Notes under the pieces: generated by a model
Databases searched by the model: none
The model's input: only the letters and a program-made list of their open reading frames with translations
What the model was told of the DNA's origin: nothing
Source: Octopus sinensis
Taxonomy: Eukaryota
Assembly (NCBI RefSeq): GCF_006345805.1
Contig: NC_043015.1
Coordinates: 50,902,001 to 50,966,000 of the forward strand
Reading direction: 5' to 3'
DNA: 64,000 nucleotides
Position numbers and translations under genes: made by a program
Part shown: one piece after another, positions 1,403 to 59,147 of the stretch
How the letters are laid out: each line of letters begins with the position of its first letter
How positions within the stretch are numbered: position 1 is the first letter of the stretch

Positions 1403-1461
1403 ATGTGACAATTTCACTGGCATTATACTTTTCCACAGTCTGACTGGTGGCACAGGAGCAG
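1403..1461 (+). CDS. TUBZ: zeta-tubulin coding exon (first visible; N-terminal exons lie upstream of the window)
   Basis: ttttgcAG|A-TGT...GCA-G|GTaagg. Translates (R)CDNFTGIILFHSLTGGTGA(G), the tubulin signature loop. 59 nt, phase 2 to phase 1. Confidence 0.9.
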
Positions 1462-1993
1462 GTAAGGTGCTCTACATATATATGTGTGTTTGTGTGTGTG
1501 TATGCATCTCATTGTCTTGAGACATTGTGTGATAATTGTAAACAAGATTCACTGTCATACATGCAGTGTCATTTCTTTCCAGATGTGCAAATCTCTGTTC
1601 TCCTGATCTTCATTAATCTCATCATTTCCTCTACAGAATCTATGTAGTCCTTAGAAGGACATTCAGATTTACCAAGTGAAGATAATTACCGAGTCTAGTA
1701 AATTTCCACTAACTTGAGTTTCACCATCAATCGCTGTAGCCAGCTGGTATTGAGACCTGATATAAGAGGTAACATGGTAGCCACCAAGATTACATGTGCC
1801 TTGAAACCATTTTGGAGAATATTGTGCAGGAGTGGCTGTGTGGTAAGTAGCTTGCTTACCAACCACATGGTTCTGGGTTCAGTCCCACTGCATGGCACCT
1901 TGGGCGAGAGTCTTCTACTATAGCCTCGGGCCGACCAAAGCCTTGTGAGTGGATTTGGTAGATGGAAACTGAAAGAAGCTTGTCATATATATA

Positions 1994-2035
<42 letters not shown>

Positions 2036-3699
2036 CATCATCATCATTATCATTTAACGTCTGCTTTCCATGCTAGCATGGGTTGGACGATTTGACTGAG
2101 CTCTGGTGAACCAGATGGCTGCACCTGACTCCAATCTGATCTGACAGAGTTTAGTGTTTTTCAGGCATAGTGTATCTTTATCATTATCCAGCATGTCCTT
2201 TGCTGCTGCTGCTGCTGCTGCTGCTGATGATGGTGGTGGTGGTGGTGGTGGGGATGACTGTGATGACGATTTTGATGATGATGGTGATGATGATTGTGAT
2301 GATGATGGTGGTCTTGATGGTGGTGGTGGTGGTGCCCAGTGGCATTTCTGTCTGTCTTTACATTCTGAGTTCAAATTCTGCTAAGGTCGATTTTTGCCTT
2401 TTATCCTTTTGTGGGGGTTGATAAAATAAGAACCCAATTGAGCACTGAGGTTGATATAATCGACTTACCCACCTCCCAGGAAATTGCTGGCCTTGAGCCA
2501 AAATTTGAAATCAATATTTTTTAATTTGGTAAAGGTGTGACTTGAGGGAGATTTTGCTGCTATTTCTTGCAGGTTGGTCACACTTCCCCTTCATTGATTT
2601 GTTTGCCTGTTCATTACAAATTGTGACATGGAAATGATATTCACCAATAACAACCCCATTTGTCTTTGTCGGTTGGTATTTGTTGCGTAAGCCATAAATT
2701 TGTTATACAGTAACCCCTCAACTATTGCAGGTGTTATGTTCCAAAACCTCCCACGATAGGTGAAAATTCATAAACTGTACTGCATGTTTTTTTTTGTATT
2801 ATTTTCATAATTTGTATATACTCTTTTACTTGTTTCAGTCATTTGACTGCGGCCATGCTGGAGCACCGCCTTTTTAGTTGAGCAAATCGACCCTGGGACT
2901 TATTCTTTTGTAAGCCTAGTACTTATTCTATCGGTCTCTTTTGCTGAACCGCTAAGTTATGGGGACGTAAACACACCAACATCGTTTGTCAAGCGATGTT
3001 GGGGGGACAAACACAGACACACAAACATATATGACCGTGGTCGAGACTTTCATAGTCTTTTCAAATGGCTAATAATGTGTGCGCGCACCACTACTACACA
3101 CATTGGAAAGCATTGTACAACCAAGTACTAAAGAAGATCTTTCCTCCTCCATGAAACAAAGCTGTTCCCGCTGGACATCAACCCAGTATTTCTAAGCTAC
3201 GGACCGAGTGATTTATTGTAAGGTTATCTCCCTAGATAGATTGCCTTCACTACGGCTAAGGAGCCCTTTCTACCCCACACACATACATATATATATATAC
3301 ATATATACGATGGGCTTCTTTCAGTTTCCATCTACCAAAGCCACTCACAAGGCTTTGGTCGGCCCAAAGCTATAGTAGAAGACACTTGCCCAAGGTACCA
3401 CGCAGCGGGACTGAACCTGGAACCATGTGGTTGGTAAGCAAGCTACTTACCACAGCCACTGAAATGCAAAATAACCCAACCCACTCGCCTCCCGAGTTTC
3501 GTTTTCCATACACTATGTGCAATTCTTTGTTTACTCATCTATGCTACACTATGCATTTTCTTTTAATATATTTTAATTAATGTTATACAGCATTGTACTG
3601 TATTCTTATTTATTAATTTTTAGGTATGGAAATGCTTATCTTGCCACAATCTAAAAAATATAAATACCTATCAGCTGCAGAAACCATCGTACAAACAAT

Positions 3700-4068
3700 A
3701 ACTCTGAGCACCTTTTCAAACTCCACCCATCTAACACCCGTGGACATATTTACAAAGTCAGAAAACAGCACAGCTCCCATGACTTCAGGAAACCTTTTTC
3801 CATGCTGAGAGTTGCTGAAGCATGGAAAAAACTGCCGGCATCAGTTGTTAGTTGTCGGAGCACTGCATCCTTCAAAACTTCCATGCTTTCTGAGATTCGC
3901 CAACACTACACCTGATTTTCTCCCCTCCATACACACACAGGCATGTATCTGACTCATACATTGTTCGCTTCCCAGACATCTTTACATTACTGCATGTACT
4001 TTATATGCACTTTCTGACAAGTTGTGGTGCACCTGAGCACTGTATACAATAATTTCATTATTATTATT
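3700..4068 (+). mobile_element. CR1-group LINE 3' end
   Basis: HPSNTRGHIYKVRK...LRVAEAWKKLPASVVSCRSTASFKTSM, then 3'UTR and (ATT)n tail. Related copies at 16215-16612 and about 26440-26520. Confidence 0.75.
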
Positions 4069-4196
4069 AAACCCGCGATATACTGCAGAGTCTGCGTGGC
4101 AGAAGTATAAGCACACTGGGCAAAATGCTTAGTAGCATTTCATCTGTTCTGTGTTCAAATTCTACCTAGATCGACTTTACTTTCCATCCTTTTGTA

Positions 4197-4410
4197 GAGG
4201 CGCAATGGCCTAGTGGTTAGGGCAGCGGACTCGCGGTCGCAGGATAGCGGTTTCGATTCTCAGACCGGGCGTTGTGTGTGTTTATTGAGCGAAAACACCT
4301 AAAAGCTCTACGAGGCTCCGGCAGGGGGTGGTGATCCCTGCTGTACTCTTTCACCACAATGGCGGTGCCCCAGCATGGCCACAGCTCAAGAGCTGAAACT
4401 GGAAAAACAA
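4197..4410 (+). mobile_element. tRNA-derived SINE, family B (GGAGGCGCAATGGCCCAGTGGTTAGGGCAGCGGACTCGCGG head)
   Basis: A/B-box-like head. Other copies at 35601-35985 (+), 48300-48597 (+), about 31000-31295 and 31320-31590 (-), and 29360-29400. Confidence 0.75.
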
Positions 4411-4679
4411 AAACAAAAACAAAAATATATATTATTCAGAAAAATCCGCAGTGTACTGGGGGTACGATAGGTGAACCGCGATATGATGAGGGATTGCTAT
4501 ATTTTCATCATTGGTGGATCTGATAAGACTGACCTTCATCGTTGTCACCACCACCACCACCACCACCACCGCACCATTATTATCATCGTCATCAGCGTCA
4601 CAATCACCACCACCATCACCACCACTACCATCACCACCACTGCTGCACCATTATTATCGTCATCATCATTGTCACTATC

Positions 4680-4711
<32 letters not shown>

Positions 4712-4776
4712 CAATAACTAAGAACCTTATTTGAACTTTAATCCATCTAAGTCTCCCTGTTTGTGTTTTGTTGCAG

Positions 4777-4918
4777 GGTTTGGCTCCCTTGTGGTGGAAC
4801 ACTTACGTGAGGCTTACCCCACCTCTTATATATTGTCCTGTGCCATTGCTCCCTTTGCCAGTGGAGAGAGCCCTTTGCAACATTATAACAGTATGCTGTC
4901 CCTGTCATGGTTACACAG
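4777..4918 (+). CDS. TUBZ: zeta-tubulin coding exon
   Basis: ttgcAG|...CACAG|GTaagt. (G)FGSLVVEHLREAYPTSYILSCAIAPFASGESPLQHYNSMLSLSWLH(R). GESPLQHYN..LSWL is the zeta/eta-tubulin form of this segment (delta has GEVIVQNYN). 142 nt, phases fit both neighbours. Confidence 0.93.
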
Positions 4919-5485
4919 GTAAGTGAAGATGGCCATTTTTCTCTGCCTGTCTGAATGTTTCCACAGAAACTGTTTGGGTTACTGGACTTTATATAAGAAG
5001 CTTTATGGGCATAACTACAGATTCCTGCCCCACTGACTTTGGATGATCATAACTTTCAGAAAAATGGATATTTTTTAATGAAATTTTCTACGAATATGTG
5101 TTATATCATGTAGATTCCGAATATACAAAACGTTTTGGGGAAAGTGTTTTAGAAGGCGATGAGGTGGGGAATTTCGGAAAATTCACCAATACACACATGC
5201 ACATATATGCATACATACACACACAAACACACACACACACTCACACACACATACACACACAAACACACACACACATGCTCTCTCACACACATACACACAC
5301 ACTCTCACACACACCCACACACACATGCTCTCACACACATACACACACAAACACACACACACACACACACACATGCATGCACATACACAAACACAAACAT
5401 ACATAAAACACACAAACAAACACACACACACACACACACACACATACACTCACACATGCATAACATTGTTTATTTCATTCTATAG

Positions 5486-5656
5486 GTTTGCTGATGGAAT
5501 AGTCATGCTTCCTAACGATGCCTTTCACCAGACATCGCTTCAGGAAAATGGTAAAATAACAAATGGCACGAAGCTCCCTGTTTGGGACATAAACCATTCG
5601 ATGAGTCAAGCCTTGGCTGGAGTTCTCTACCTTACCGACAGTCTTTTATTTGAGAG
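5486..5656 (+). CDS. TUBZ: zeta-tubulin coding exon
   Basis: tatAG|G...GAGAG|GTacgt. (R)FADGIVMLPNDAFHQTSLQENGKITNGTKLPVWDINHSMSQALAGVLYLTDSLLFE(R). Contains the tubulin 'D...ND' and 'N..(I)A..LAG' motifs. 171 nt. Confidence 0.9.
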
Positions 5657-5675
5657 GTACGTATATATTTTCAGT

Positions 5676-5995
5676 GAGGGCACGTGGCTTAGTGGTTAGG
5701 GCATTCGGCTCATGATCGTAAGGTTGTGAGTTCGATTCCCGGCGACGCGTTGTGTCCTTGAGCAAGACACTTTATTTCACGTTGCTCCAGTCCACTCAGC
5801 TGGCAAAAATGAGTTGTACTTGTATTTCAAAGGGTCAGCCTTGTCACTCTCTGTGTCACGCTGATTATCCCCGAGAACTACATTAAGGGTACACGTGTCT
5901 GTGGAATGCTCAGCCATTTGCACGTTAATTTCACGAGCAAGCTGTTCCGTTGATCGTATCAGCTGGGACCCTTGTCGTCGTAACCGGCGGAGTCT
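5676..5995 (+). mobile_element. tRNA-derived CORE-like SINE, family D
   Basis: GAGGGCACGTGGCTTAGTGGTTAGGG...GTTCGATTCCC...CCTTGAGCAAGACAC. Copies at about 7600-7770, 27958-28205, 33700-33990 (-) and 41785-41955. Confidence 0.72.
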
Positions 5996-6139
5996 TTTTT
6001 TTATATATTTTCAAACTGTTCTACCAACACTCTTCGATCTAAAAAATAAGCCCCCGGGACATTACTGTCTTGAGCCCTGAAACCCATAGCGTCAAGTACC
6101 TGGTTTCCATCTCATAGAAATGACCAGGATTTAAGGTGG

Positions 6140-6380
6140 TGAACTGGCAGAAGCGTTAGCACGCCGGACGAAATGCTTAGCGATATTTTGTCTGCCGCTA
6201 CATTCTGAGTTCAAATTCCACCGAGGTCAACTTTGCTTTCCATCCTTTCAGGGTTGATAAATTAAGTACCAGTTACGCACTGGGGGTCGATGTAATTAAC
6301 TTAATCCCTTTGTCTGTCCTTGTTTGTCCCCTCTATGTTTAGCCCCTTGTGGGCAATAAAGAAATAGGTATTTTGTCTGG
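6140..6380 (+). mobile_element. tRNA-derived SINE, family C (GGCGAGCTGGCAGAA...GGTCGACTTTGCCTTTCATCCTTTCGGGGTCGATAAA)
   Basis: Recurrent element, also at about 12778-13010, 22255-22430, 38080-38275, 45810-45985, 54795-55281, 58268-58485 and 63738-63942. Confidence 0.75.
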
Positions 6381-6602
6381 GATTGCAAGATTCCCTTGAA
6401 GGGAATGCCAGTCCATCAGAGGATTAGCCCTTTACAGCTGAACTGACTGGAGTAACGTGAAATGAAGTGTCTTGCTCAAGAATGCAATGCACCACCCAAT
6501 CCAATAATTGAAACCGCAATCTTGTGATTGGTAGTCAATTCTCTAACCACTGTGTTACATGTTATTTCAAAAATGATTATATATTATTTTCAAATTGTGC
6601 TA

Positions 6603-6965
6603 TTAGAAAAGAATGGATGGGAGGCAATGTGCCTTCCTGTAGAGATAGGTATCAGAGAATTTTCTGGAACCATATTTCACTCAATATGCAAGAGTCTTAG
6701 ACTAGCTGCAAAGGAAACAAAAGAAGCTGCTAGAAAATTGTCAGAAGCTGCTGAGAAAGCAAGTCATTACATCTAGCTCAAGAGAAAAAGTATTGAGGAG
6801 GACAGAAACATCTGGTCCAGAGTCACGATGTTTAACTCAACAAAGCTCATACTGTTGTGTTTGAGTCTTATCACCTACATCAATTGACAGACCCTGGTAG
6901 GTCTGGTGTTGCAGTGAAAAGGGCCAAAACTCCCAAAGAGCTGCTTCACCGCCTGATGAAACATC
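6603..6965 (+). mobile_element. HERO-like (restriction-like endonuclease) non-LTR retrotransposon 3' fragment
   Basis: GWEAMCLPVEIGIREF...AARKLSEAAEKASHYI*LKR resembles the HERO C-terminal GW...C.PVEVGCRGF...EAAEKASRWLW..R. Confidence 0.6.
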
Positions 6966-8090
6966 AACTCCTGTATTTAGAGTTGGTGTGCAACAATACT
7001 CTCAACACACGAGTGTTTGCCCTAAACGTTTTGAAAGCTATCCTTTATTATGTGCCCATGTGTAGTTTATATTATGTTGCTGTTACTGAGCTCTGTTGAT
7101 GGTGAAGGTATACAGGGTGAGTCTAGCTCTCAATAAATACTGTGGGAAGCGGTAGAAGGTAACATTTCTATATGGTAACATATCAGAAAATGAATGGAGT
7201 TATTGAGATGTAATAATTTATTGTTATTAAAACTGTTAACATATTTTGTTTGATTTAAAATTAATATCTTCAATTTGTGAGTCTCCTTTCTCGAGGAGTT
7301 TTAAAGCATGACTTGGCAAATTGAGAAATCAATGTCGTTATTATTATATTAATCAATATCGTTAATATAAAGAAATCAATATTGCTATTCATTTATTAAT
7401 GGCTAGTCGTGCTGCAGAATCAAGAATCAAACCAATTTATAAAACCATTCCTCTATAAATGGTAAGAAACCATTATCATGGTTGACTTCCGAAATGACAA
7501 CAACCTCTGGATATGTGGTGCTGTTTTTCAAAATTTTCCATTGTCCAAGAAGTTTCTTTTTTAAAATGTGTTTATCACATAAATAAAGTGGTTACGGTGA
7601 GGGCACATGGCTTAGTGGTTTGAGTTTTCAGCTCACAATCATAAGGTTGTGAGTTCAATACCCTGCAGTGTTTTGTCCTTATGTAAGACACTTTACTTCA
7701 CTTTATATCACATTGCTCCAGTCCACTCAGCTGACAAAAGCAAGTTATATCAAGGAGCCAACCTTGTCACATTCTGTATCTTTATCCTTTTCTACTCTAG
7801 GCACAAGGCCTGAAATTTTTGGGGAGGGGGAAGTCAATTAGATCAACCCCAGTACACAACTGGTACTTAATTTATCACCCCGAAAGGATGAAAGGTAAAG
7901 TCGATCTCATATCTGTTAAATACTCTTTTCTACACTTAGCAGTTTGGCAAAAGAGACCAATAGAATAAGTACTAGGCTTACAAAGAATAAGTCCTGGGGT
8001 CATTTTGCTCGACTAAAGGCAATGCTCCAGCATGGACACAGTCAAATGACTGAAACTAGTAAAAGAATAAAAGAATATGTGCGCACAATA

Positions 8091-8512
8091 GGCGTAGGAG
8101 TGGCTGTGTGGTAAGTAGCTTGCTTACGAACCACATGGTTCCAGGTTCAGTCCCACTGCATGGCACCTTGGGCAAGTGCCTTCTACTATAGCCTCGAGCC
8201 AATCAAAGCCTTGTGAGTGGATTTGGTAGATGGAAACTGTAAGAAGGCCATTGTATATAAATATAATATATATATATATATATGTATGTGTGTCTGTATT
8301 TGTCTGTCCCCTCAACATTGCTTGACAACCGATGCTGGTGTGTTTACGTCCCCGTAACTTAGTGGTTCGGCAAAAGTGACCGATAGAATAAGTACTAGGC
8401 TTACAAAGAATAAGTCCTGGGGGTCGATTTGCTCGACTAAAAGGCAGTGCTCCAACATGGCCACAGTCAAATGACTGAAACAAATAAAAGAGTAAAAGTA
8501 AAAGAGTAAAAG
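8091..8512 (+). mobile_element. CORE-type tRNA-derived SINE, family A (most abundant)
   Basis: GGCGCAGGAGTGGCTGTGTGGTAAG...CACCTTGGGCAAGT (CORE hallmark), internal (AT)/(GT) microsatellite, tail ...CAGCATGGCCACAGTCAAATGACTGAAAC. Confidence 0.85.
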
Positions 8513-8758
8513 ACACAATGGGCTTCCTTCAGTTTCTATCTACCAAATTCACTCACAAGGCTTTGGTCAGCCTGAAGCTGTATAGTAGAAGATAATACTT
8601 GCCCAAGGTTCTACACCGTGGGATTGAACCAGGAACCACGTGGTTAAGAAGGAAGCTTCTTACCACACAGCTACACCTGAACCTATAATTATACCTGTGC
8701 CAATAATTACATCTGTCTACCTGTTTCATCACACGATATACACTTCCTAATTTTGCAG

Positions 8759-8854
8759 GGGTTACAGCCTTGGCAGTGAACCCTGGTACCTCCTGAAAAC
8801 CTTGTGCTCCAGACCTGACACGAAGATTATATCACTGACTCACAAACGGCTCCG
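8759..8854 (+). CDS. TUBZ: zeta-tubulin coding exon
   Basis: ttttgcAG|G...CTCCG|GTacgt. (R)GYSLGSEPWYLLKTLCSRPDTKIISLTHKRL(R). Matches the zeta-type 'G.EPW.L...LCP' segment. 96 nt, phase 2-2. Confidence 0.85.
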
Positions 8855-9069
8855 GTACGTAGACGTGTGGAAATTGGTTATTATTCCAACAATGGAATCT
8901 GTTAATGGAACTGGTCTCATTTCTTTCTTTTGCTCTGTGTGTGTGTATGTGCGTGCGTCTTTTAATAGTTTAGCAAGTAGGTAGGTGGATTAGAGAGAGG
9001 TGCCGTGAATGAATTCTGTTAACATATCTTTGCATAGAATAAAATAGTCTCAGACAGGAATGTTGTAAT

Positions 9070-9800
9070 CTTTGTCGCCGTCGTTGTCGTTGTGGTCATC
9101 ATCGTCATCATCACTATCATCATCATTGTCGTCACTATTGTTGCCACTGCCACCACCACTACCATGGCTACCAATACTACCATCACCACTACTCCACTGC
9201 TACCATCATCACCTCCTCCTCCTCCTCCTCTTCCTCCTCTTCCTCTTCCTCCTCTTCCTCTTCCTCCTCTTCGTCCTCCTCTTCCTCTTCCTCCTCCTCT
9301 TCTTCCTCCTCCTCCTCTTCCTCTTCCTCCTCCTCCTCTTCGTCCTCCTCTTCGTCCTCGTCCTCCTCTTCCTCCTCTTCCTCTCCTCCTCCTCTTCCTC
9401 CTCCTCCTCCTCTTCGTCCTCGTCCTCCTCTTCCTCCTCGTCCTCCTCCTCCTCCTCCGTCGCCACCACCAACACCAGTACAATCATCATCTTGATCATC
9501 ATTATCATTGTCGTCATCACCATAATCATGATCATCATGATCAGCATCTTCATCGTCATCATCTCATCACCACTGATGCTACCACTTTGATTATCACACC
9601 ACCACCACTGCTGCCGTTGCAGTCACCACCACCGCCACCACTGTTGCCGCCACCGTTGCCACCACCACAACCACCACCACCACCACCACTACCACTGCCA
9701 TCACCATTATCACTACCACCACCATCTTTAACATTCACTGATGCCACCACCTTCATCACCTCAGCATCATCACCCCTATCAACCTCTCACTCCCACCCAC
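9070..9800. repeat. compound triplet microsatellite (CAT/CCT/CAC)n
   Basis: Visible simple repeats that generate spurious poly-P/poly-R ORFs. Comparable tracts at 18130-18411, 27340-27560, 29920-30440, 31880-32205 and 50555-50970. Confidence 0.95.
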
Positions 9801-9845
9801 CCCACTCACCTACCTCTATACTATTTCCTATTTTAAATTTTCCAG

Positions 9846-9909
9846 ACATTCATGGGAGCAGAGTCTGACCTCAGTAACAAGATTATTCTCGGCAGCAGAC
9901 AAGAAGTTT
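9846..9909 (+). CDS. TUBZ: zeta-tubulin coding exon ending at a U12 AT-AC donor
   Basis: tttccAG|A-CAT...AAG-TTT|ATATCCTTTT. (R)HSWEQSLTSVTRLFSAADKKF. 64 nt, phase 2 to phase 0. Confidence 0.85.
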
Positions 9910-11539
9910 ATATCCTTTTGCTCTTTGTTTATTTCCATTTGTGATGTTGTACTTTCACTGATTGCTTCTGCTACTGTTGCTATTGGTAAATGGAAACTGA
10001 AAGAAGCCTGTCGTATGTGTGTGTTAGTGTCTTGTTGTCTTTACATTGCAAAGCAGTTTCCATTCTTCTTCGTTTGCAGTCTTCTTGGCAAATATGTCTG
10101 GCCATGGGGAAATATGGACAGGAAGGGTTGGTGACAGGGAGAGGGTCCAACTGTAGAAAATTTATGTCATTTAATTCTGTGTGAGCCATGGAAAAATGAA
10201 CATCAAAATGATGATGATGATGATGTTGATGATGATGATGATGTTGATGATGATGATGATATATATATATATATAGGCATAGGAGTGGCTGTGTGGTAAG
10301 TAGCTTGCTTATAAACCACATGGTTCCGGGTTCAGTCCCACTGTGTGGCACCTTCGGCAAGTGTCTTCTACTATAGCCTCGGGCCGACCAAAGCCTTGTG
10401 TGTGGATTTGGTAGACGGAAACTGAAAGAAGCCCGTCGTATATATGTATACATATATATATGTTTGTGTGTGTGTATGTTTATGTGTCTGTGTTTGTCCC
10501 CGCAACATCGCTTGACAACCAATGCTGGTGTGTTTACGTCCCCGTAACATAGCAGTTCGGCAAAAGAGACCGATAGAATAAGTACTAGGCTTACAAAGAA
10601 TAAGTCCTGGGGTCGATTTGCTCGACTAAAGGCGGTGCTCCAGCATGGCCACAGTCAAATGACTGAAACAAGTAAAAGAGTAAAAGAGTAAAAAGAATAT
10701 ATATACATATATATATATATATTTATATATGTATGTATATATGAAGATATCTATACGTATAATGAAGAAGTAAATGGTATAGTTTTCCACTTTATACACC
10801 ACAACTAATTAGTGTTCTAATGGAGCTTCAGGAATATAAAATTAAGAAAGAGAGAAACAAATTTCAAAGACTTGCATTCATATTCATTCGATCCAATACA
10901 TAGATGCGTTCACATATCTGAGACATGATAAAAATTCATTAGAGTTTATAAATATTTGAATAGACGAAGATTTTTATATCTATATAAAAATTCATAAATA
11001 TATTAAAAATTTATAAATTTATAAAAACTGATAAACATAAAAACATATGAATATAAATACATAGATGTACTTGCGAAGTTGAATGTCCGTATTAGAGGGT
11101 GGCTGAGGAGGGTAGATGAAGAAGTTAGTATAAAATGATTTAAGAGGAATCTTGATAAAGTGCAAAGCAATTATCTATATTTCTCTCATCAGAGTTAAAA
11201 GATAAATTTTAAGAGACATGAAAGATGTGAGATTTTTTAAAAAAAACGAATGCGTTGTTGGACCATACTGTTCATGTGGATGACATAATTAGAATTAAAA
11301 TTACATGTTAAGATAATTAATTGAATATGTATATATATATATTCAATTAATTCACCATGATAGATTGCTAGCCGCTAAACCTTTTTCTATTTTCTCTCTC
11401 TGTCTATTTCTGTGTTCCTTTCTGTTGAAGAGCGTAGGCTCAAAATGTAAAAGACTTTCTCATTTCCCAAGCATTAAACTAATACATCTGTTTGTTGTTT
11501 ATACACCCCTCTTTGTCTTTTGTTTTTTTTAATAAATTT

Positions 11540-11585
<46 letters not shown>

Positions 11586-11703
11586 CGTATATTTGCCATT
11601 TGAATATGGCTAACCCCTTAGGGGTTAGCCATATTCAAATGGCAAATATACATCACGATGTGTTGCCGCTACTGTTTATAACTCGCTCTGAGATTTATCA
11701 TTG

Positions 11704-11779
<76 letters not shown>

Positions 11780-11899
11780 TATATCATTATCATCATCGTT
11801 TAGCATCCGCTTTCCATGCTAGCATGGGTTGGACGATTTGACTGAGGTCTAGTGAACCAGATGGCTGCATCAGACTCCAATCTGAGTCTGGTGCAGCCA

Positions 11900-11951
<52 letters not shown>

Positions 11952-13146
11952 ATATATATATGTGTGTGTATAAACGTATGCATGTATGTATATGTTAATG
12001 CAAGTGAAACAATTGTTGGATTTTTAAGATGACATCTAAAATAAAGATAAGATTTTCTTTGTACATATCCTTGATTGTTGTTAATACTCTGAATTTCTTA
12101 AAATTTTGCATAAGGATTGTTGTATTTACCTGTCATACATGAGGATTTACCTGAGATTTCTATTCTCCAGACATTTACTGGTATCTACTTGTTGGAAATT
12201 CAACCTTATTCCTTCATACTGAGTGCTTACTTGATATCTGCCAAATTTCTTTAAGCCTATTTTTTCTTCCCTCTCTCTCTCTCTCCATACACACACAAAT
12301 ACACACACACACACACACACTCACACACACATATGAAGAGTTTCTGTCAACCAAATCAACTCACAAGATTTTGGTTGTTCCAGGGTTTATAGAAAAAGAT
12401 ACTTAGCCAAGGTACCACACATTGGAACTGAACCTGAAACCATGCAGTTGTAAAACAAACTTCTTAACCACACAGCCAAGCTTTTGTCTTCTTTAGAAAC
12501 CCATTATATTCCTGTCTAAATTTCTTCACCATTATTAAAGCCTAGAGATTTCTTATTTCCCAATTAATATATTTGGTTTAAAATCTCCACAAAATCTTCG
12601 CAATAAACCAATCTATTCTCATTTACATTTATATTATATTTCATGTTGCGGTTCAAGTTGGTTTTGCTTTTTCTGGTGTCTGGTATTTTTCTTCTTTTTT
12701 TATGTTACTGTTATTGCGTTATAAAATATTTTTGTTACCAAAACAATACAGGCACAGGTGTGGTTGTGTGGTAAGGGCAGCAAGCTGGCAGAAACATTAG
12801 CATGCTGGGAGAAATGCTTAGCGGTATTTCATCTGCCGTTACATTCTGAGTTCAAATTCCGCCGAGGACGACTTTGCCTTTCATCCTCTTGGGGGTCAAT
12901 AAATTAAGTGCCAGTTAGATACTGGGATTGATGTAATCGACTTAATACCTTTGTCTGTTCTTGTTTGTCCCCTCTATGTTCAGCCCCTTGTGGGCAATAA
13001 AGAAATAAGAGGCTTACTTCCCAACCACACGGTTCTGGGTTCAGTCCCACTGCATGGTACCTTGGGTAAGCATCTTCTGCTAATAGCCTTAGGCCAACTA
13101 AAGCTTTGTGAGTAGATTTGGTAGACAGAAACTGAAAGAAGCCCAT

Positions 13147-13185
<39 letters not shown>

Positions 13186-13967
13186 ACGTATATATGTATG
13201 TATATATATATATATATGTGTATGTGTGTGTGTATGTTTGTGTGTCTATATTTGTCCCCCACCCAACATTGCTTGACAACTGATGTTGGTGTGTTTATGT
13301 CCCTGTAACTTAGCGGTTCAGGAAAAGACACTGATAGAATAAGTACTAGGCTTACAAAGAATCAGTCCTGGGGTCGATTTGCTCAACTGAAGGCGGTGCT
13401 CCAGCATGGCCACAGTCCTGTTGCCAACACTAAACTGTCTCCAAGCATGATAATATGATATTTTGTTTTTGGAAGATTGGAAATGAGCATCATTTGCTTG
13501 TAATGGCTGTCATACTCATTTACAACCACCATATGACAACAAGACAGCAAACACACACACACACAAAAACAAGTACACACATTCTCACACAAACACACAC
13601 ACACGTTCACACATAATAACGTTTACACACTCACACACACACACACACACAAACACATTCACATGCACAAACAAGTACACATGCTAATAAACTCACAGAC
13701 ACAGACACACAAGTACACTCATACTCAAACACACTCACACAAACATACACACACACATGATGGGATTCCACACAGTTTCCATCTACCAAATTAACTCACA
13801 AGGCATTGGTTAGCTCGTCCAGGGTGCCACACTATGGGACCAAACCCAAAACCTCATGGTTACCAATTAAGAATCCTCACCTCACAACCATGCCTGCACC
13901 TCTTTATTATAATTCGTAAAATTTCTACAAGAACTTCCGTATTTTTCCCTTAATGTTTTTCTCATAC
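9910..13967 (+). other. U12-type (minor spliceosome) AT-AC intron of zeta-tubulin, 4058 nt
   Basis: 5' ATATCCTTTT, branch TTCCCTTAAT at 13945-13954, 3' TAC at 13965-13967. Joins ...DKKF|KSVSNILVGRG in frame. Confidence 0.88.
10276..10698 (+). mobile_element. family A SINE, full length, inside the U12 intron
   Basis: Same head, CORE and tail as 8091-8512. Confidence 0.85.
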
Positions 13968-14109
13968 AAATCTGTTTCAAATATTTTGGTTGGTCGAGGT
14001 GAGAACCAATCATATGACTTCATACGAGCCATACAGAAACGACAACAACAGATTGAAAATAACCTGAATTGTGTTTCATGGAATCCGTGTCCAGTCGACT
14101 ATTGGTCAG
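13968..14109 (+). CDS. TUBZ: zeta-tubulin coding exon
   Basis: catAC|AAA...TCA-G|GTaaga. KSVSNILVGRGENQSYDFIRAIQKRQQQIENNLNCVSWNPCPVDYWS, with the conserved 'RG' and 'V.WNP.PV' motifs. 142 nt. Confidence 0.9.
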
Positions 14110-16817
14110 GTAAGATTGTATCAACAAATATCAACGTATTTACTCTTTCTCTCTTTTATTCTCTTTTACTTGTTTCAGTCATTTGACTGTGGCCATGCTG
14201 GAGCACTGCCTTTAGTTAAGCACATCGACCCCAGGAGTTATTCTTTGTAAGCTTAGTACTTATTCTATCGGTCTCTAAGTTATGGGGATGTAAACACACC
14301 AGCATCGGTTGTCAAGCGATGTTGTGGGGACAAACACAGACACACAAACACACATACACACACACACACACATATACATACATACGACGGGCTTCTTTCA
14401 GTTTCTGTCTCTCAAATCCACTCACAAGGCTTTAGTTGGCCTGAGGCTATTGTAGAAGACACTTGCCTAAGGTGCCACACAGTGAGACTGAACCTGGAAC
14501 CATGTAGTTTGTAAGCAAGCAACTTACTACACAGCCACTCCTTTGTTCATTGTTGTTGTTGTTGTTGTACTTCCTCTTCTTCTCTAACTCTTTTGTTATC
14601 AACCCATCTGAGACTGCCATAGGTTCTATGATACAATCCTCCTGTTTTAAAAGGATCATGATTAAAACCTTCTATCAAAATTTCTTGTTGATTTATGTTA
14701 ATTTATGCTCCTAGCACCAGCTTAATAATAAAATTATGTTATAAAACACTTCATAATTTTAAAAGTCATTTGAAAGGAAATTATATAAATTACACATATT
14801 ACAAATAAGATATACTAGACTACCTGTGACCTGTTGGGTCACCGGGAAAGTTTGAGTTTCTCAGCAATGGAGTTTCGTTTCGTGGGTTTTTTCTTTCCCA
14901 GGTTATTTCGCATGCTTTCAACGAATGTGACATCAAAATCACACGTAAACGGCTCCTTTCCCCAGAAAGCGAAAGATTTGGCTGCTATTTCTTGCATGCC
15001 CTGCTGCTACGTAGCAAGTATTTCAGTTCCTTTATCACAAATAGCTGTTACATGGTAGCAGGGTCTGCTAGAAACAGCAGCGAAATCTTTGGAGGTGAGA
15101 TGTGTGAATGCACTCGAAAAAAACCTATGGAAAAAAATTGTTTCACACTGAGGTTACAAGTGGGTCTTTTACAAAATATTTACCATATTTTAAAAATCAT
15201 TTTCACTTAAAAATATTTTAAAAATATGCCAGAAAAAATATTTGTAATGGTATACACTTGAAAATAATTAAAAAAAACATTAAAACGTTGTCTGTTTAAC
15301 GAAAGCTAAAATATAAATACTTACTGTACAAACAACACATTCACTTAAAATATTTCTAAACGATTAAAATATTGTGCTTAATAAAAGCAAAAATAGAAAC
15401 ATTTACTGTAAAAAACAAATCATATTTTTTTGTTGTCAAGTCACTGTGTCTAATCAAAAGGTAAGAGCTTCTAGCCTTTCATGATTAAGTTACTTTCAGA
15501 ATACTTTCCCATTATGCACCGTTTTGAGTATTTATACCCCAAAAATCCCTCAAAAACCATTTGTCTGATATACGTGTAACTTGTTTTATTCTGTTCGTAT
15601 TAACATTTCAGGGACAACTTAATTCATCGTATTTTCCCATTATGCGCCAGTTTGGCTGGGTAACATTGCAAGCAAGAAAGCAAGATTCAAGCTGACTTTT
15701 AATGTATTATAGATCTCCAGTATTGTCGGTATACCTTGTATTTAAAAATATCTGCAGTCAGTCTTCACAACTATGACTTTGCCTTTGGTATTTCTTGATA
15801 AGCTTTCTCCATTCTGGTTGGTTTTCACTTCGGTTTGCCATTTATTATCACAAATTCCTTTCCACTTCATATTCCTTTTTGCAGTTTCTTTGAGTCTCAG
15901 TCTAGGTCTTTCCTGGTTTCTTTTCCCCTTGCATTGTTGGGAGTAACGGATTTATTTGAACGAGTTTGTTGTTGTCCATCCTGTGTTCATGGCCCAACCA
16001 ATGTAAATTCCTATCCTCTGACATGAGTTCCCCTCCACAAATGCTCCTGCCCCTCTCATAATTCCTTGTCTTATGAGTTACCTTGGTGACCCTGCCAGTG
16101 CTGGTGCCACGTAAAAAGAATCCAGTCCACCTTGTAAAGTGGATGGTATTTGGAAGGGCATCCAGCTGTAATAACCGTGTCAGAGATGTGCAACCAAGCG
16201 AATACCCTCCATCAGGCATCTACTATACTCTGAACACCTTGCTTCCCTGGGCATAGATACACTAAAGTTCTGATGTCTGGCAACTGATTTAGTGAACCCC
16301 TGCAAACAGCACAGCTCCCATGACTTTCAGAAACATTTTTTCACACTCAGAATTACTGAAGCATGGAACAAATTTCCTGCATCAATTGTTGGTTGCCAAA
16401 ACATTGCATCCTTTAAAACCTCAATGCTTCCTAAAATTCGCCAACACTACACCTGATATCTTCACTCCATACGCATGCACACATGTATATCATAACTCAT
16501 ACACTATTCACTTTCTTGACTTTTGTACATAATTCTATGTACTGTACATACACCTTTAACGAGCTGTAGTGCACCTGAGCACTATACAAAATAGTTTCAT
16601 TATTATTATTTAAAACTAATCTCACCTGTGCTAGTACCATGTAAAAAGCACTGAGTCCTCTCTGCAGAGTGGTTGGTGTTAGGAAGGGCATCCAGCCATA
16701 AAACCCCTGCATGGGATTGTTTTTTACCTGGCCAACTCCTGTGAACTGTCCTACCCATGCATAGCATGCATGGAAGCCGTTAAACAATGATGATGATGAT
16801 GAAGGGTTTCCATCATA

Positions 16818-17236
16818 GGCGCAGGAGTGGCTGTTTGGTAAGTAGCTTGCTAACCAACCACATGGTTCCGGGTTCAGTCCCACTGCGTGGCATCTTGGGC
16901 AAGTGTCTTCTGCTATAGCCCCGGGCCAACCAATGCCTTGTGAGTGGATTTGGTAGACGGAAACTGAAAGAAGCCTGTCGTATATATGTATATATATATA
17001 AGTGTGTGTGAATATGTTTGTGTGTCTGTGTTTGTTCCCCTAGCATTGCTTGACAACCGATGCTGGTGTGTTTACGTCCCCGTCACTTAGCAGTTCGGCA
17101 AAAGAGACCGATAGAATAAGTACTGGGCTTACAAAGAATAAGTCCCGGGGTCGATTTGCTCGACTAAAGGCGGTGCTCCAGCATGGCCGCAGTCAAATGA
17201 CTGAAACAAGTAAAAAGAGTAAAAAAAAAGAGTAAT
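16818..17236 (+). mobile_element. family A SINE, full length
   Basis: Same structure. Further copies at about 1828-1985, 2825-3455 (-), 14160-14540 (-), 20704-21106, 23588-23936, 24325-24680 (-), 25525-25865, 34842-35232, 46555-46952 and 53171-53570. Confidence 0.85.
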
Positions 17237-17338
17237 AGGAGATAGGCCAGCATGCCATAGAATCTCTTCATCATCAATGTAACTTGAAAATCTAAAAGAA
17301 ATAATTAAAAATCCCTGTGTACCTTTCTTGCTTTATAG

Positions 17339-17496
17339 CTGATCACTGTCTTCCTGGTGAGAAAGTTTCTTCTCTGACGCTGGCATCCAACACTGGCTAC
17401 GTAACTGACTTTCTGGAGAGAACTTTATACAAAGCTAAAAGAATGCATGAAAATAAGGCATATTTACATTGGTACTGGAAGCATGGAGCTTCACAG
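17339..17496 (+). CDS. TUBZ: zeta-tubulin coding exon
   Basis: ctttatAG|CT...TCACAG|GTaaaa. (A)DHCLPGEKVSSLTLASNTGYVTDFLERTLYKAKRMHENKAYLHWYWKHGASQ, with the tubulin C-terminal 'AYLHWY' motif. 158 nt. Confidence 0.93.
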
Positions 17497-18412
17497 GTAA
17501 AAGAAATGATTTATTTGGAAAGTCCATTATAAACAATTGAGGCAATATTTAATTAAAACAGCCATCTATGTATCACACTAAATGCATATACACAGTCTAT
17601 AGGCCAGTTACTTCACTATTTGTCCAGAGATAACATCTATTATGGATGTGCTGTGTTAAAAATACAATAAGTATCAGAGAGAGATGGAAATTTGTCTCAG
17701 CAGCGGCCAGTGAGAGCATCAGATGCATTTCAGCGTTTTTGCGCCTCTTCAATACATGTACTCACAACCAGATTATCATCTCCATTTCATCATCTCTATT
17801 TTCATGTTTCTCTGATATTTATTGTGTTTTTAACACAGCAAGTCCCTAAGAGATGCTACCTCAAAGCAAATGCTGCAGCAGCTTATCTCTCTCAACAATG
17901 TATATACATTAAGTATGATACATAGATGGCTGTTTTGATGTATTTGGGTTTGGTTGTTTCTGCTGAATTTACTTTTTACATTGTTAATTGCAAGCTTAAT
18001 GAATCTTTATTTACTTACTTTTTGTTATTTCTTAGTACACTGGAGATCTGATGAAAATATTCCAGGCATACATCAAGAAATTACTGGCCAATGTGTAAAT
18101 TTAAGGGAAAAAAATTGTTTGAGTTAAATATCCTCCTCCACCTCCTTCTCCCCTCCTCCCTCTTATTCCTCCTCCTCCTCCTTCCTTCTTCCCTCCTCCC
18201 TCTTCTTCTTCCTCTCCTCCTTCTCCCCCCTTCTTCTTCCTCTTCCTCCTTCTTCTCCCCTCCCCTTCTTCTTCCTCTTCCTCCTCCTTCTCCCCTCCCC
18301 TTCTTCCTCCTCTTCCTCCTCCTTATCTCTCCTCCTCCCCTCCCCTTCTTCTTCTTCTTCGTCTTCTTCTTCTTCCTCCTCCTTCTTCTCCCCTCTCTTC
18401 TTCTTCTTCTTC

Positions 18413-18447
<35 letters not shown>

Positions 18448-18456
18448 TGATAGATA

Positions 18457-19482
18457 TCTTTATTTATTAGCCATGCAGGGCCAAACACAGGGGACAATAC
18501 AATGTAGAACTTTTTGAAAGAAAGAATAAAAAACGATCAAAAGGGATCGAAAGTGTTTGGGACATGTAAACAGCAAAATAAGGCTGAGTAATAATGTAAA
18601 ACAGATTATGTTTATCTGTTGAAAGAAAAGCCTACGGGAAAGACCATGATAACCTCAGGTAAGGAAAGAAATACATGACAGCAAAGCACTCTCTCTCTCT
18701 CTTTCTTTTGGATTTACAGGATCATGCTTAAAGTGGTTTTGTCATTCACGCGTACCATCTTTGCTACATTCACCAACCTTTTATTGAAACTTTCACGGGA
18801 CAAAACTTGCCTCTCTATTCTCACCTTCCTTTCCAAGTGGTGCTTGAAAAAGTTGATGAGCGATTGGCCAGAGAGGAAAGTGTTTGTCTCTAAACCTTTC
18901 ACACGAGTCCTCCACACACATTCTTTCACCGTAGCCACCAGTACTGCCTTGCCTTCCTGGTTAAAGGAAGGTGGCGGGGAAATATTCACAATAGACTCAG
19001 CCGGTAACCGAATTCGTCGTACACATGACAGCAGTTGTTTGACATAAGCCCACAGGTCTGAAATGGTTGGGCATTGTACGAGTGTGTGCAGAATGGTTTC
19101 GTTGCTCTGACCACATCCCAGGCAAGTCGGTCTGGTGAATCTCGAACTGTGCCTGTAGATTTTATCCTGAACAGACAATGCTTCCTGATAGCACTGCCAG
19201 GCTAGGGATCTCTGGTGATTGTCCATAGGTCCCAGCCCAAAAGTTGTCCTGAAGAGGCGGGTCAAGTGTTCCCTGTCGTCGCCCAGATTCTCCCAAAGAA
19301 CATCGTCGCATCTCCTCTGCATTAATCCTCTATAGAATGCCTTTGTGGAATTGAAGTTGCACAAGTTTGGTCCCAGCTGGCAGAGTTGCTTAAGAGCAAG
19401 GCGGCACTCACAGTGTCATTTGCCTAGCCTTGTTCTCTTTTTGATCCATGACTGCTGTTCGTCTCTGATCCACGAGTGAGGT
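18457..19482 (-). mobile_element. Tx1/L1-clade LINE, 5'-truncated, inserted in a (GATA)n array
   Basis: ORF2 C-terminus with zinc knuckle CLGCGQSNETILHTLVQC (stop at 18714), 3'UTR with AATAAA, and (GATA)n on both sides. Confidence 0.82.
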
Positions 19483-19498
19483 AGATAGATAGCTAGCT

Positions 19499-19574
<76 letters not shown>

Positions 19575-20040
19575 GAGTGATGCACTAGTACTCAGGTGGT
19601 GCCCATTTACAACTGAGTAAACTGGAACAACATGAAATAAAGTATCAAGAACATAACACACTGCTCGATCCATAAGAATCCATTCCTTATGATCGTGAAT
19701 AGAACCTACCCCTCCCTCCAATCACTAGGACACACACCTATCCGAAAGGATTAGATATTCTCTTTCTTATTTTGCTACAAGGCCTTAAATTTAGGGAGAG
19801 GGTCTAATCGATTGACATAGACCTCAGGGCTCAACGGATACTTTATTTTATCGACCTAGAAAAAATGAAAGGCAAAGTCGAGCTCAGAGAAATTTGAACC
19901 CAGAACGTAAAGACGGCCGTGTGTCTATTGTCCTGCAAGTTAACTGTTTGGTTTCTCCTTTCTTTATTAAAAACAAAAATCAAATTTGATTCTATTTACT
20001 CATTTCGTATTTTCTTTTTCTTTTCTTTTTGTTTCTTCAG

Positions 20041-20115
20041 AATGATTTTGAGAATGCGTTTGAGACGGTACAAAGGATCATTGACAATTACGAAGCAGTT
20101 GCTACATCATCATGA
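20041..20115 (+). CDS. TUBZ: zeta-tubulin last coding exon
   Basis: Long pyrimidine tract ttcttcAG|. NDFENAFETVQRIIDNYEAVATSS* corresponds to tubulin helix H12. Possible polyA signal ATTAAA at 20255-20260. Confidence 0.9.
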   Translation, partial: NDFENAFETVQRIIDNYEAVATSS

Positions 20116-21559: not shown

Positions 21560-22145
21560 ACTACTGCTTTCAATTATGGTCACCCTGCACTGTAGGATAA
21601 ATAGTAGAGCTTGAAGCTGTTCAGAGATACTTCACGAGGAAGATTGCATCAATGGAATATCTGAGCTACTGGGAGAGACCGAAAGAGCTACGACTGTGCT
21701 TCTTGGAGCGAGAGGTACGCAGTGATATATGTATGGAAGATACTGGAAGGGCTGGCACCAAACTTTAGAATTGAGAGTTATACCAGACCTCGAAATGGAC
21801 GTCACTGCACTGTTCCAAAAGTCCCAGCTGTCTCATCTAGGGCGAGGACAATGTACTGCAATAGCTTGGGATTCAAGGGCCCACAGCTATTTAACTCCTT
21901 GCCAAAACATCTGAAGGACCTCCATGGAGTGGGAGTAGAGGTTTTCAAGATACAACTTGACCTCTTACCATCCAAGATCCCAGATGAACCAATATCAAGG
22001 CAGGAAACACAAAAGAGGGCAGCGATATCGAACTCCCTCCTTCGCCAGAAGCCAAATCCATAGAATCGGCCAATTAAAAGATGATTATAATGGCGGTACC
22101 CCAGCATACCCACAGCCTCAAGGCTGAAACATAAAAGAATAATAA
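21560..22145 (+). mobile_element. CR1/L2-group LINE 3' fragment
   Basis: LEAVQRYFTRKI...IYVWKILEGLAPN...KGPQLFNSLPKHLKDL...FKIQLD...IPDEP, with frameshifts and a 3' tail. Confidence 0.8.
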
Positions 22146-46474: not shown

Positions 46475-46542
46475 ATAGTATAGTGGGATAAGTATCCCCG
46501 CCTGTCACGCGGGAGACTGGGGCTCGATTCCCCGTCAGGGAG
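46475..46542 (+). pseudogene. tRNA-Asp(GTC), 5'-truncated by an (AT)n array
   Basis: TAGTATAGTGG..AGTATCCCCGCCT-GTC-ACGCGGGAGAC..GGCTCGATTCCCCGTCAGGGAG. Anticodon 46504-46506, T8 terminator 46547-46554. The 5' acceptor strand (expected TCCCTG) is absent and T54 is C. Confidence 0.85.
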
Positions 46543-52233: not shown

Positions 52234-52948
52234 ATATGTTAGTTAGTTAATTTGGCTCAAAAGCAAATAGCAAGGCCATGTAGGGGGACATGGAGTTAAG
52301 TACAGGGTGGTGTTCATGTAAAGAGTTCAGGCCACTTGAGGTCCAAGGAGGCTTTGAACAAAGCGGTCGTCGGCATCTTCACCATCTCGTCTGGCAGCTT
52401 GTTCCACGGATCCGCAACCAGGACGGAGAAAGCTCCTCTCCTTCGATTGAGATGAAATCGTCGCAGGTAGAGCTTTTCAGAATGACCCCGCAGCCGACGC
52501 TCTGGAGCAGGAGTGAAGAACAGCTCTTTCGAGAGGTTACACTTTCCGCTTATGATGTTGTGGGCGAGAATGAGATCACCACGGCGGCGGCGTTTTTCAA
52601 GAGAATAAAGTTCGAGCGTCCTCAGCCTTTCTTCGTAGGACAAATTTTTGAGACCATGAACCATGCGGGTAGCCAGCTTCTGGACTCTTTCGAGATGCTG
52701 TATGTCTTTGAGGAGATAAGGAGAAGAGGCTTGAATCCCATACTCCAATATGGGTCTCACCAGCATGACATAGAGTGGTAGGAATATGGCTGCTGTGAGC
52801 ATTCCAAATGACCGTCGAATCAAGAACAGAATTCCACGTGCTTTGTTGGCAGCATGGACGCACTGGGCCGAAGGCGAAAAGGAGGAATCCACCAAGATAC
52901 CCAGGTCCTTTACCTGATCGGTCCTCTCCAGCAGCAGACGACCCGGCT
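52234..52948 (-). mobile_element. CR1-clade LINE 3' fragment
   Basis: LVRPILEYG...LERVQKLATRMV.GL..LSYEERL..LELYSLEKRRRRGDLI...LRGHSEKL...WNKLP, with a (TAAC)n tail. Confidence 0.9.
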
Positions 52949-57293: not shown

Positions 57294-59147
57294 ATATCCT
57301 TTCTAATTCCATAATTACATCACAATTTTATTTATTTATACAAGCAGAAACTTTTTGCTGAAACTTAGTATAAGTTTTACGAATTATGTATGTATGTATA
57401 CGAGTTATGTTTTCATGTATAAGTACACTTGTCAACACTTGTCAATAATTAAATTTACATTCGTTAAATTCGTCTCAGTCCATATTATATATATCATATA
57501 GTAATGAGCAGCTAAAAAAAAAAGGTTATAATTTGCTGGCGAGTTATTATTTTATTTTCGCCACAATAACATTAAACCTGTTGCTTCGTTCTACGACTTT
57601 TCATATTTTATCAATTGTTCCCGCTTTTGAATTTGTATTTTATTATTTATTTTCGTCTACGTTATTCGTTGCTTTGAATTGTTACCATGTTGTTTTTTTC
57701 AGTGTTTATATCTGTCGTGTTTTTCTTGCGACACTGAATAAAAAAAACAAAACAAAACACGTACTTATAATGTTCGCAAACAAACACGAATTAAAAGTCG
57801 AAGCATTCTGTTACCCCCCCCCCGTTTCAGCAGACGGGTGTAATAGTAGGCGTGGCTGTGTAGCTAATAAGTTTAGTTCCCCAACCATGTGGTCTTGGGT
57901 TCAGCGCAGCACCTTGGGTCGACCAAAGCCTTGTGAATGGATTTGGCAGACAGAACTTTAAAGGGCCCCGCTGTACATGCATGCATGTATGTATATATGT
58001 ATGTATGTGTGTGTGTGTGCATGCATGTATGTGTGTGTGTCACCTTGTCTTAACATCGTGTGATAGTTGTAATTGAGTATCACTGCCCTGCGAGTAGTGC
58101 TCTTCATTTTCGATCTTTTTTTTTTTTTGGAAACTTGTTCAGTCATGGAGTAAGGAAGGGCAGAAAATCTACATCAACGAATTGTTTATCTTGGTCATTG
58201 ATACTTCATTCTTCTGAATCCTTAAAACTTGGATTATGCCCTCTATGAATATTAAGCTGGTCCTATAAGGCGGCAACCTGGCAGAATTGTTAGCACTCCG
58301 AGCGAAATGCTTAGTATCGTTTTTAGTCTGTCTTCATGTTCTGAGTTCAAATTCTGCCGAGGTCGACTTTGCCATTCATCCTTTCAGATTCAATAAAATA
58401 AATACCAGCTGAGTACTGGGGTCAATGTAATCGACTGCCCGCCTTCCAAAAAATTGCAGGCCTTGTGCAAAAATTCGAAACCAATATTAAGCACATCTTC
58501 ATCTTTGAATGCCCACTTTTCCATGTTTGCATGAGTTGCACAGAAATAATTGAGGTAGATTTTCTTCAGCGAGATGCCCTTCCTGTCACCCACCCTCACT
58601 TGTTTCCAAACCAGATAATATTTCCCCTTGGCCTGACTCAGTTTTCTGGAGAGGAACAGCATCACTTGAGTGACCATGATGCTCATTTAACAACCGTTTC
58701 CTCATCTCAGGATGAAAGTTCAGATGAACATATGCATTGTTGTTCATTTCCAATATTTCTGTGAAAACTTGTCTGTCCATAGGGTAATATTCCCTTGCTG
58801 GGAAATCAATGAAGGTTGGTGACAGGGAAGACATCCAACCATAGAAAATGTGCCTCAATAAGCTCCATCCAAGTCATGCAGGCATGGAAAAGCAGGTGCT
58901 AAGATGATGATGATGGTAACAAGCTTCTTTCTGTTTCCATCTATTAAATACACTAAAAACTTTGAATATCCTTAGGCTATAGTAGAAGACATTTTTCCGA
59001 GGTGCTGCACAATGGGACTGAACCTGGTACCACAGGTTTGGAAAACAAGATTCTTAACCTCAAGCCATGCTTGCACCTATGATAGCCACACCTGTGCCTT
59101 GTTATTTATCAACGTTTGTCATTATTGCTACCTTAACTCCTTCCAAC
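57294..59147 (+). other. U12-type AT-AC intron of IFT80, 1854 nt
   Basis: 5' ATATCCTTTC, branch CCTTAAC at 59131-59137, 3' AC at 59146-59147. C|AT rebuilds the His codon of KEPKH. Confidence 0.93.

Follow-up and report, generated by a model that had tools for sequence, protein, structure and literature searches.

The stretch of Octopus sinensis DNA analysed here (contig NC_043015.1, positions 50,902,001 to 50,966,000, forward strand; 64,000 nucleotides (nt), referred to as the window) raised the question of how two neighbouring exons of a zeta-tubulin gene, 9846-9909 and 13968-14109, are joined in the messenger RNA (mRNA). The segment between them starts with AT and ends with AC, and the initial annotation had read it as an intron of the minor, U12-dependent class. 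The splice signals, the protein encoded across the junction and the same position in other animals were analysed, and they indicate that 9910-13967 is very probably a U12-type AT-AC intron of the octopod zeta-tubulin.

Splice signals of the probable AT-AC intron

The exons of the gene within the window were lettered A to H, and the intron in question lies between exons E and F. Its features are as follows.

9910-13967, plus strand: probable AT-AC U12-type intron, 4058 nt, phase 0
9910-9918, plus strand: U12-type 5' splice site ATATCCTTT, matching the consensus at 9/9 positions, AT subtype
13947-13954, plus strand: branch-site motif CCCTTAAT, matching TCCTTRAY at 7/8 positions, with the branch A at 13953
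13966-13967, plus strand: 3' terminal AC, the end of the intron
10245-10742, strand not assigned: interspersed repeat, of which about 20 more copies occur elsewhere in the window (77-92% identity)
12772-13417, strand not assigned: second interspersed-repeat block with up to 19 other copies in the window at 77-92% identity

When exon E is read in frame from exon D, it is directly followed by ATATCCTTTT, the AT dinucleotide occupying 9910-9911. The sequence at the 3' boundary is tttttCCCTTAATgtttttctcatAC/AAATCTGTT, and the intron ends 14 nt after the branch A at 13953. Only tgtttttctcat separates the branch motif from the AC; the region is T-rich and, judged by eye, there is no tract 5' of the branch site. 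The boundaries, the in-frame join and the branch distance were all found where the initial annotation had placed them. It had described a 4-kb intron full of short interspersed nuclear elements and microsatellites; (TA)n, (AC)n and (ATG)n tracts are numerous and the two repeat blocks listed above are present. No Rfam family was found inside the intron (no small nucleolar or small nuclear RNA).

In the window, RTATCCTTT matched five times on both strands against 2.06 expected, and two of the four plus-strand matches stand exactly at exon ends. The probability that RTATCCTT exactly at an exon end is combined by chance with CCTTRAY 8-20 nt before an AC exactly at the start of the next exon was estimated by us, from the base composition, to be of order 1e-8. 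The plus-strand ATATCCTTT matches at 42813 and 43872 have identical left flanks of 90 nt and identical sequence on the right-hand side; they belong to two copies of a single repeat, separated by about 1.06 kb, and neither stands at the end of any open frame.

Protein encoded across the E/F junction

Joining 9909 to 13968 gave a single open frame in phase 0, HSWEQSLTSVTRLFSAADKKF/KSVSNILVGRGENQSYDF, in which the peptide reads ...FSAADKKF/KSVSNILVGRG. This peptide aligns with tubulins of the PDB, the stretch '...aadk.kfksvsnilvgrge' lying against the ...MMAAVDVTKGTFLACSLLFRGE region of an Asgard tubulin, and the Trp encoded by exon E is near-invariant in the family alignment. The closest relatives read across the join as RKFKSIANILVGRG (P0003), KQFKSISNFLIGRG (P0004) and LKFKSTANVLVGRG (P0233), or in longer form as ...FSVDGRKFKSIANILVGRG, ...SRDKQFKSISNFLIGRG and ...FSISGLKFKSTANVLVGRG respectively. 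The AT-AC product matches the FS..(K/R)KF/KS pattern of these three proteins and of Haliotis, and it is the only join that reproduces the FS..KF/KS motif of the closest relatives. P0003, which reads RKF KSIANILVGRG, is encoded without interruption on Logan contigs of 1.3 kb and therefore represents a spliced mRNA. Its codons at the site, AAA TTT AAA TCT, are carried by the mRNA contig L001 from a relative with 53% identity; the octopus window predicts AAG TTT/AAA TCT.

All joins between GT/GC donors at 9860-10140 and AG acceptors at 13600-14010 were enumerated together with the skipping of exon E, and the candidates were scored against a family hidden Markov model (HMM) built from 90 orthologues. 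The initial annotation had held that no AG acceptor gives a phase-compatible and homologous join. As regards homology this was upheld, since none of the GT/GC-AG joins yields a homologous peptide; as regards phase it was not, since 43 of them are in frame and stop-free. The AT-AC join obtained the best score of the 44 candidates, 336.8 bits against at most 332.3. A protein search with the 68-residue peptide spanning the E/F junction gave no candidates; a longer concatenated query succeeded.

Gene model and identity of the gene

The plus strand between 1403 and 20115 carries eight exons of a divergent tubulin in one stop-free frame ending in TGA. The exon model was guided by two predicted proteins found by homology, P0001 (a MetaClust model) and P0002 (O. 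bimaculoides XP_014789290.1).

1403-1461, plus strand: exon A, CDNFTGIILFHSLTGGTGAG, with the tubulin signature; earlier exons lie 5' of the window
4777-4918, plus strand: exon B, flanked by GT-AG
5486-5656, plus strand: exon C, flanked by GT-AG
8759-8854, plus strand: exon D, ending in phase 2 (..CTCCG/gtacgt)
9846-9909, plus strand: exon E, 64 nt, encoding (R)HSWEQSLTSVTRLFSAADKKF, with the canonical AG acceptor ttttccag/
13968-14109, plus strand: exon F, starting with AAATCTGTT and encoding KSVSNILVGRGENQSYDF...VDYWS
17339-17496, plus strand: exon G, flanked by GT-AG
20041-20115, plus strand: exon H, with the stop codon TGA at its end

The tubulin signature SLTGGTGAG stands at about 1446 on the plus strand. 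The N-terminus of the gene is 5' of the window, which leaves about 110 N-terminal residues outside it. Six of the seven introns are GT-AG, with GTAAG or GTACG donors and pyrimidine-rich AG acceptors, and only the intron between E and F is AT-AC. The 301-residue product gave a match to the Pfam Tubulin family PF00091 (E 2e-19, 70.9 bits), of which Tubulin/FtsZ GTPase domain the exons in the window cover only the C-terminal part, and it aligned over its full length with PDB tubulins (E about 1e-17 to 1e-22). The Tubulin_C domain was not detected by Pfam in this divergent protein. The Pfam score was the same with and without exon E (70.9 and 71.0 bits), and therefore Pfam cannot choose between the joins.

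An exhaustive HMMER search placed the protein in a distinct orthologue family, with E values between 1e-95 and 1e-45 where beta- and gamma-tubulin reach about 1e-17, the closest matches having 34-62% identity. The members found by the profile search come from sharks, amphibians, reptiles, several fishes, molluscs and annelids, and further from a brachiopod, echinoderms, hemichordates and cnidarians. There was no mammal among the best 120 matches, which fits the loss of zeta-tubulin reported for placental mammals (PMC4741028). The family profile matched the X. tropicalis protein P0172 with 8e-158, and the 90%-identity cluster of P0172 includes 'zeta tubulin L homeolog' NP_001082326.1 and 'Zeta tubulin' A0A803JL53, in agreement with the name given to the gene in the initial annotation; the automatic names of NCBI for the orthologue family are 'tubulin delta chain-like'. 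Five intron positions are common to the octopus gene and the Xenopus zeta-tubulin. The octopus gene is accepted here as zeta-tubulin (TUBZ1), an assignment made from family clustering.

Predicted octopus proteins at the junction

Neither P0001 nor P0002 contains the peptide of exon E. Before KSVSN both read MDPHLTTMPAPFYYNFRIFPLMFCSY, which corresponds to 13872-13967 of the window, that is the 3' end of the intron; the translated intronic stretch, MDPHLTTMPAPFYYN..FRIFPLMFCSY, is partly derived from a repeat. Judged by their sequences the two models look truncated or mis-spliced, and they do what the initial annotation had expected of predictors restricted to GT-AG, namely drop the 64-nt exon. 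Their FRIFPLMFCSY is consistent with a conserved CCCTTAATG...TCATAY, and the 3' end of the intron is the only part of it on which they are informative. P0001 and XP_014789290.1 are wrong at this point, as the 64-nt exon is lost and a conserved stretch of the tubulin fold is removed with it; once the AT-AC intron is recognised, the complete and homologous zeta-tubulin is recovered.

The orthologous intron in other animals

The genomic loci of eight orthologues were obtained and each annotated protein was mapped exactly onto its own locus. In all seven mapped bilaterians the conserved Trp is held by a small exon of 75-78 nt, and a phase-0 intron separates this exon from the ..S.....RG exon that comes next. 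The orthologous intron opens with GTATCCTT in six of these seven other bilaterians with an intron at the site.

Xenopus tropicalis: 5' end GTATCCTTT; branch motif CCCTTAAC, 12 nt from the 3' end
Cetorhinus (basking shark): 5' end GTATCCTTT; weak branch motif (6/8), either CTCTTAAT at 15 nt or TCGTTAAG at 26 nt
Owenia (annelid): 5' end GTATCCTTT; branch motif TCCTTAAT, 12 nt from the 3' end
Mya (bivalve): 5' end GTATCCTTC; branch motif GCCTTAAC, 11 nt from the 3' end
Liolophura (chiton): 5' end GTATCCTTT; branch motif ATCTTAAC (6/8), 11 nt
Haliotis (gastropod): 5' end GTATCCTTC; branch motif TTCCTGAT (6/8), 9 nt
Lingula (brachiopod): 5' end GTAAATATT; no branch motif, a pyrimidine tract and hence U2-type
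Nematostella (cnidarian): no intron at the site

In the six genes with GTATCCTT the motif was found in no other mapped intron, one junction each in Haliotis and Liolophura being unmapped. The initial annotation had pointed to this position in other animals as the place where U12 retention or U12-to-U2 conversion might be seen. The U12 intron is kept in Xenopus, shark, bivalve, gastropod, chiton and annelid, while Lingula has a U2-type intron and Nematostella none. Its assignment of the octopus intron to the U12 type is supported by the complete donor match, the best HMM score of the join, the FS..KF/KS motif and the presence of GTATCCTT in six other bilaterians.

U12 introns are known to switch subtype and to be converted to the U2 type. 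From the distribution of the sequences above, a U12 intron at this site was probably ancestral to bilaterians and likely of the GT-AG subtype. The simplest reading is that the U12 intron was kept in the six sampled lineages and in the octopus lineage, which would have exchanged GT-AG ends for AT-AC. For Nematostella, these loci fit a loss of the intron as well as its absence from the start.

As a separate observation, an intron of the zeta-tubulin gene of Haliotis cracherodii (L003 10830-13720) carries a long tandem array whose units repeat the end of the preceding exon, the peptide LSHLHR(YT) being matched about 60 times.

Weighing of the alternatives

Several observations weigh against a U12-type AT-AC intron at 9910-13967. 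The first position of the branch motif is C and not T. The 5' motif taken alone occurs in the window about as often as chance allows, which is not significant. In the HMM scoring the best GT/GC-AG alternative falls only about 4.5 bits short of the AT-AC join, a small difference explained by the variation of this part of the protein from phylum to phylum, and the join of GT 9874 with AG 13931 is likewise in frame with a product of the same length (301 residues). Aligned as proteins, octopus and Haliotis differ in the boundary, that of octopus being one codon further 3' (KKF/KS against KP/FKS; window 9907-9909 / 13968, Haliotis L003 17831 / 18469), a displacement that could have arisen by a 3-nt slide accompanying the subtype switch or by compensating one-codon indels. 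When P0001 and P0002 were looked up exactly, neither was located on a genomic contig, and therefore the 5' splice site is not comparable between octopus species. What decides the matter is that the join matches the closest relatives locally and that the position of the intron is conserved.

The most serious GT-AG join would be made by the major spliceosome from GT 9874 to AG 13931, in which case the U12-like motifs would be coincidental. The AG at 13930-13931 is present as the initial annotation had stated. The join is stop-free and in frame, reaches 330.3 bits where the AT-AC join reaches 336.8, and gives the product ...HSWEQSLTS/NFRIFPLMFFSYKSVSN... from the mRNA junction CTGACCTCA/AACTTCCGT, and P0001 and P0002 likewise read NFRIFPLMFCSY before KSVSN. 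However, it exchanges VTRLFSAADKKF for NFRIFPLMFFSY, which has no counterpart in any relative, its acceptor aaaatttctacaag lacks a real pyrimidine tract, and its intron would be displaced by 12 codons from the site shared by seven bilaterian orthologues, six of which carry GTATCCTT there. It would also turn the 9/9 donor, the branch at 14 nt and the AC at the conserved position all into coincidence, and this explanation is considered highly improbable.

The absence of the exon E peptide from P0001 and P0002 (XP_014789290.1) could also mean that the 64-nt exon is unused, the transcript either skipping it or starting inside the intron. Skipping of 64 nt shifts the frame unless the intron is translated, which is what the two models do (MDPHLTTMPAPFYYN...); they are, however, computed models, and such pipelines typically prefer canonical splice sites. 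Exon E moreover holds the near-invariant Trp and aligns with the region immediately preceding the ...RG strand that is conserved in all tubulins, and a small exon of 75-78 nt stands at the same place in each of the seven bilaterian orthologues, which makes non-use of exon E extremely unlikely. The long, repeat-filled introns and the location of the N-terminal exons outside the window would suit a decaying pseudogene in which the splice signals are unused relics. Against this, the eight exons in the window all read in one open frame and their splice signals are intact, the protein is about 90% identical to the O. bimaculoides-type P0001 and 37-45% identical to other molluscan orthologues, and all the residues invariant in the family are present, so that a pseudogene is scarcely credible. 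A chance motif, skipping of the exon in the main product and a pseudogene were all rejected on the evidence given here, and the U12-type AT-AC intron is retained as the explanation of the locus.

Proposed splicing of the intron

The signals in the sequence of the E/F intron, the open frame across the join, the homology of the protein and the conservation of the intron in orthologues were observed directly. Use of the junction in the mRNA and dependence of the intron on the minor spliceosome are what we infer from them, and the steps below follow the established knowledge of U12 splicing. At the 5' end of the intron, ATATCCTTT would base-pair with U11 and later with U6atac, and U12 would pair with CCCTTAAT, bulging the A at 13953. 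The 3' site would be picked by the short branch distance of 14 nt, with cleavage after the AC. The mature mRNA is predicted to read AAGAAGTTT/AAATCTGTT, or in longer form GACAAGAAGTTT/AAATCTGTTTCA at the E-F junction, and the protein ...DKKF/KSVSN.... The intron is orthologous to the U12-type GT-AG intron of vertebrate, mollusc and annelid zeta-tubulins, its ends having presumably gone from GT-AG to AT-AC by a subtype switch in the lineage leading to octopus. Octopus bimaculoides has been reported to encode a protein of the DROL1 subfamily, and DROL1 is needed for the splicing of AT-AC introns in Arabidopsis (bioRxiv 10.1101/2020.10.19.345900).

A second AT-AC intron and other features of the window

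The gene IFT80 starts at 57257 on the same strand, so that zeta-tubulin (1403-20115) and IFT80 (57257 onward) stand head to tail, both on the plus strand and about 37 kb apart. Exon 1 of IFT80 begins with the ATG at 57257 and reads ATG AGA CTC AAG ATT TCA TTA CAA AAA GAA CCG AAA C, ending ...CCGAAAC/ATATCCTTTCTA. Its intron, of the AT-AC U12 type by its signals, starts at 57294 with ATATCCTTTC and has the branch motif ACCTTAAC at 59130-59137, the A lying 11 nt from the terminal AC at 59146-59147; the 3' end is ACCTTAACtccttccaAC/ at 59147 and exon 2 runs from 59148. The join at 59148 gives the N-terminus of IFT80 (PDB 8bd7_I and 5n4a_A, E 2e-8). With the AG at 59150-59151, four bases downstream, the frame would not be homologous. 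In human and zebrafish, IFT80 is known to contain a U12 intron (PMC9992838). Judged from the sequence, there are at least two AT-AC introns with a complete set of signals in the octopus genome, and these lie in neighbouring centriole/cilium genes.

The only Rfam match of the window at the gathering score was a transfer RNA (tRNA) at 46475-46535 on the plus strand (31.4 bits, model positions 7-64). It adjoins copies of the interspersed repeat and may be the tRNA-derived head of a short interspersed nuclear element or a degenerate tRNA. The open frames 52314-52895 (minus strand) and 21722-22063 (plus strand) read ...LVRPILEYGIQASSPY...LERVQKLATR...LSYEERL...LEKRRRRGDLI, motifs that we take to resemble the C-terminal part of the reverse transcriptase of a long interspersed nuclear element; these frames are probably retrotransposon fragments.

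Significance

The result is a correction of annotation and a tidy evolutionary example; it leaves the knowledge of U12 splicing unchanged and carries no mechanistic novelty. One site in nine species displays U12 retention (vertebrates, molluscs and the annelid), a switch to AT-AC, a U2-type intron and the lack of an intron. With zeta-tubulin, the set of cilium-related genes dependent on the minor spliceosome would gain a centriole/basal-foot gene. The initial annotation knew of no report of a U12 intron in zeta-tubulin, and a full-text search found no paper pairing zeta-tubulin with 'minor intron'; the pairing of zeta-tubulin with U12 was found in a single oxymonad genome paper, by co-mention only. 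Automated U12 catalogues may already list the GT-AG orthologues. Zeta-tubulin should be absent from the minor-intron gene lists of human and mouse, because it is reported lost in placental mammals.

It is conceivable, though rather unlikely, that retention of the U12 intron since the bilaterian ancestor is functional, slow minor splicing serving as a shared rate-limiting control of centriole/cilium genes. If this were true, zeta-tubulin and its neighbour IFT80, with an AT-AC intron of its own, would belong to a group of cilium genes controlled by the minor spliceosome, and the link between the minor spliceosome and cilia known from human and zebrafish disease models would extend to a gene that mammals have lost.

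Comparison with known systems

The octopus intron and the introns of Xenopus tropicalis tubz1, shark, Mya, Haliotis, Liolophura and Owenia are alike in gene family, exon pair and phase 0, and they share the 5' core TATCCTT and a CCTTAAY-like branch motif 9-15 nt from the 3' end. The octopus intron differs in its ends, which are AT-AC where theirs are GT-AG, in its length of 4058 nt with a load of repeats and microsatellites against 298-2331 nt, and in the exon upstream, which has 64 nt against 75-78 nt. The Lingula intron has the same position, and its GTAAAT with a pyrimidine tract would make it a case of U12-to-U2 conversion; compared with this conversion and with Nematostella, octopus kept the U12 identity and only the subtype was changed.

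Like the intron of IFT80 and the classical AT-AC U12 introns, the zeta-tubulin intron has the ATATCCTTT donor, a CCTTAAY branch motif 11-14 nt before the AC and apparently no long pyrimidine tract, the difference from IFT80 being the host gene. The rare U2-type AT-AC introns have a U2-like donor (ATAAGT-like) and a pyrimidine tract. The octopus intron shares the terminal dinucleotides AT and AC with them, but unlike them it has the U12 consensus donor ATATCCTTT and a U12 branch motif near its 3' end.

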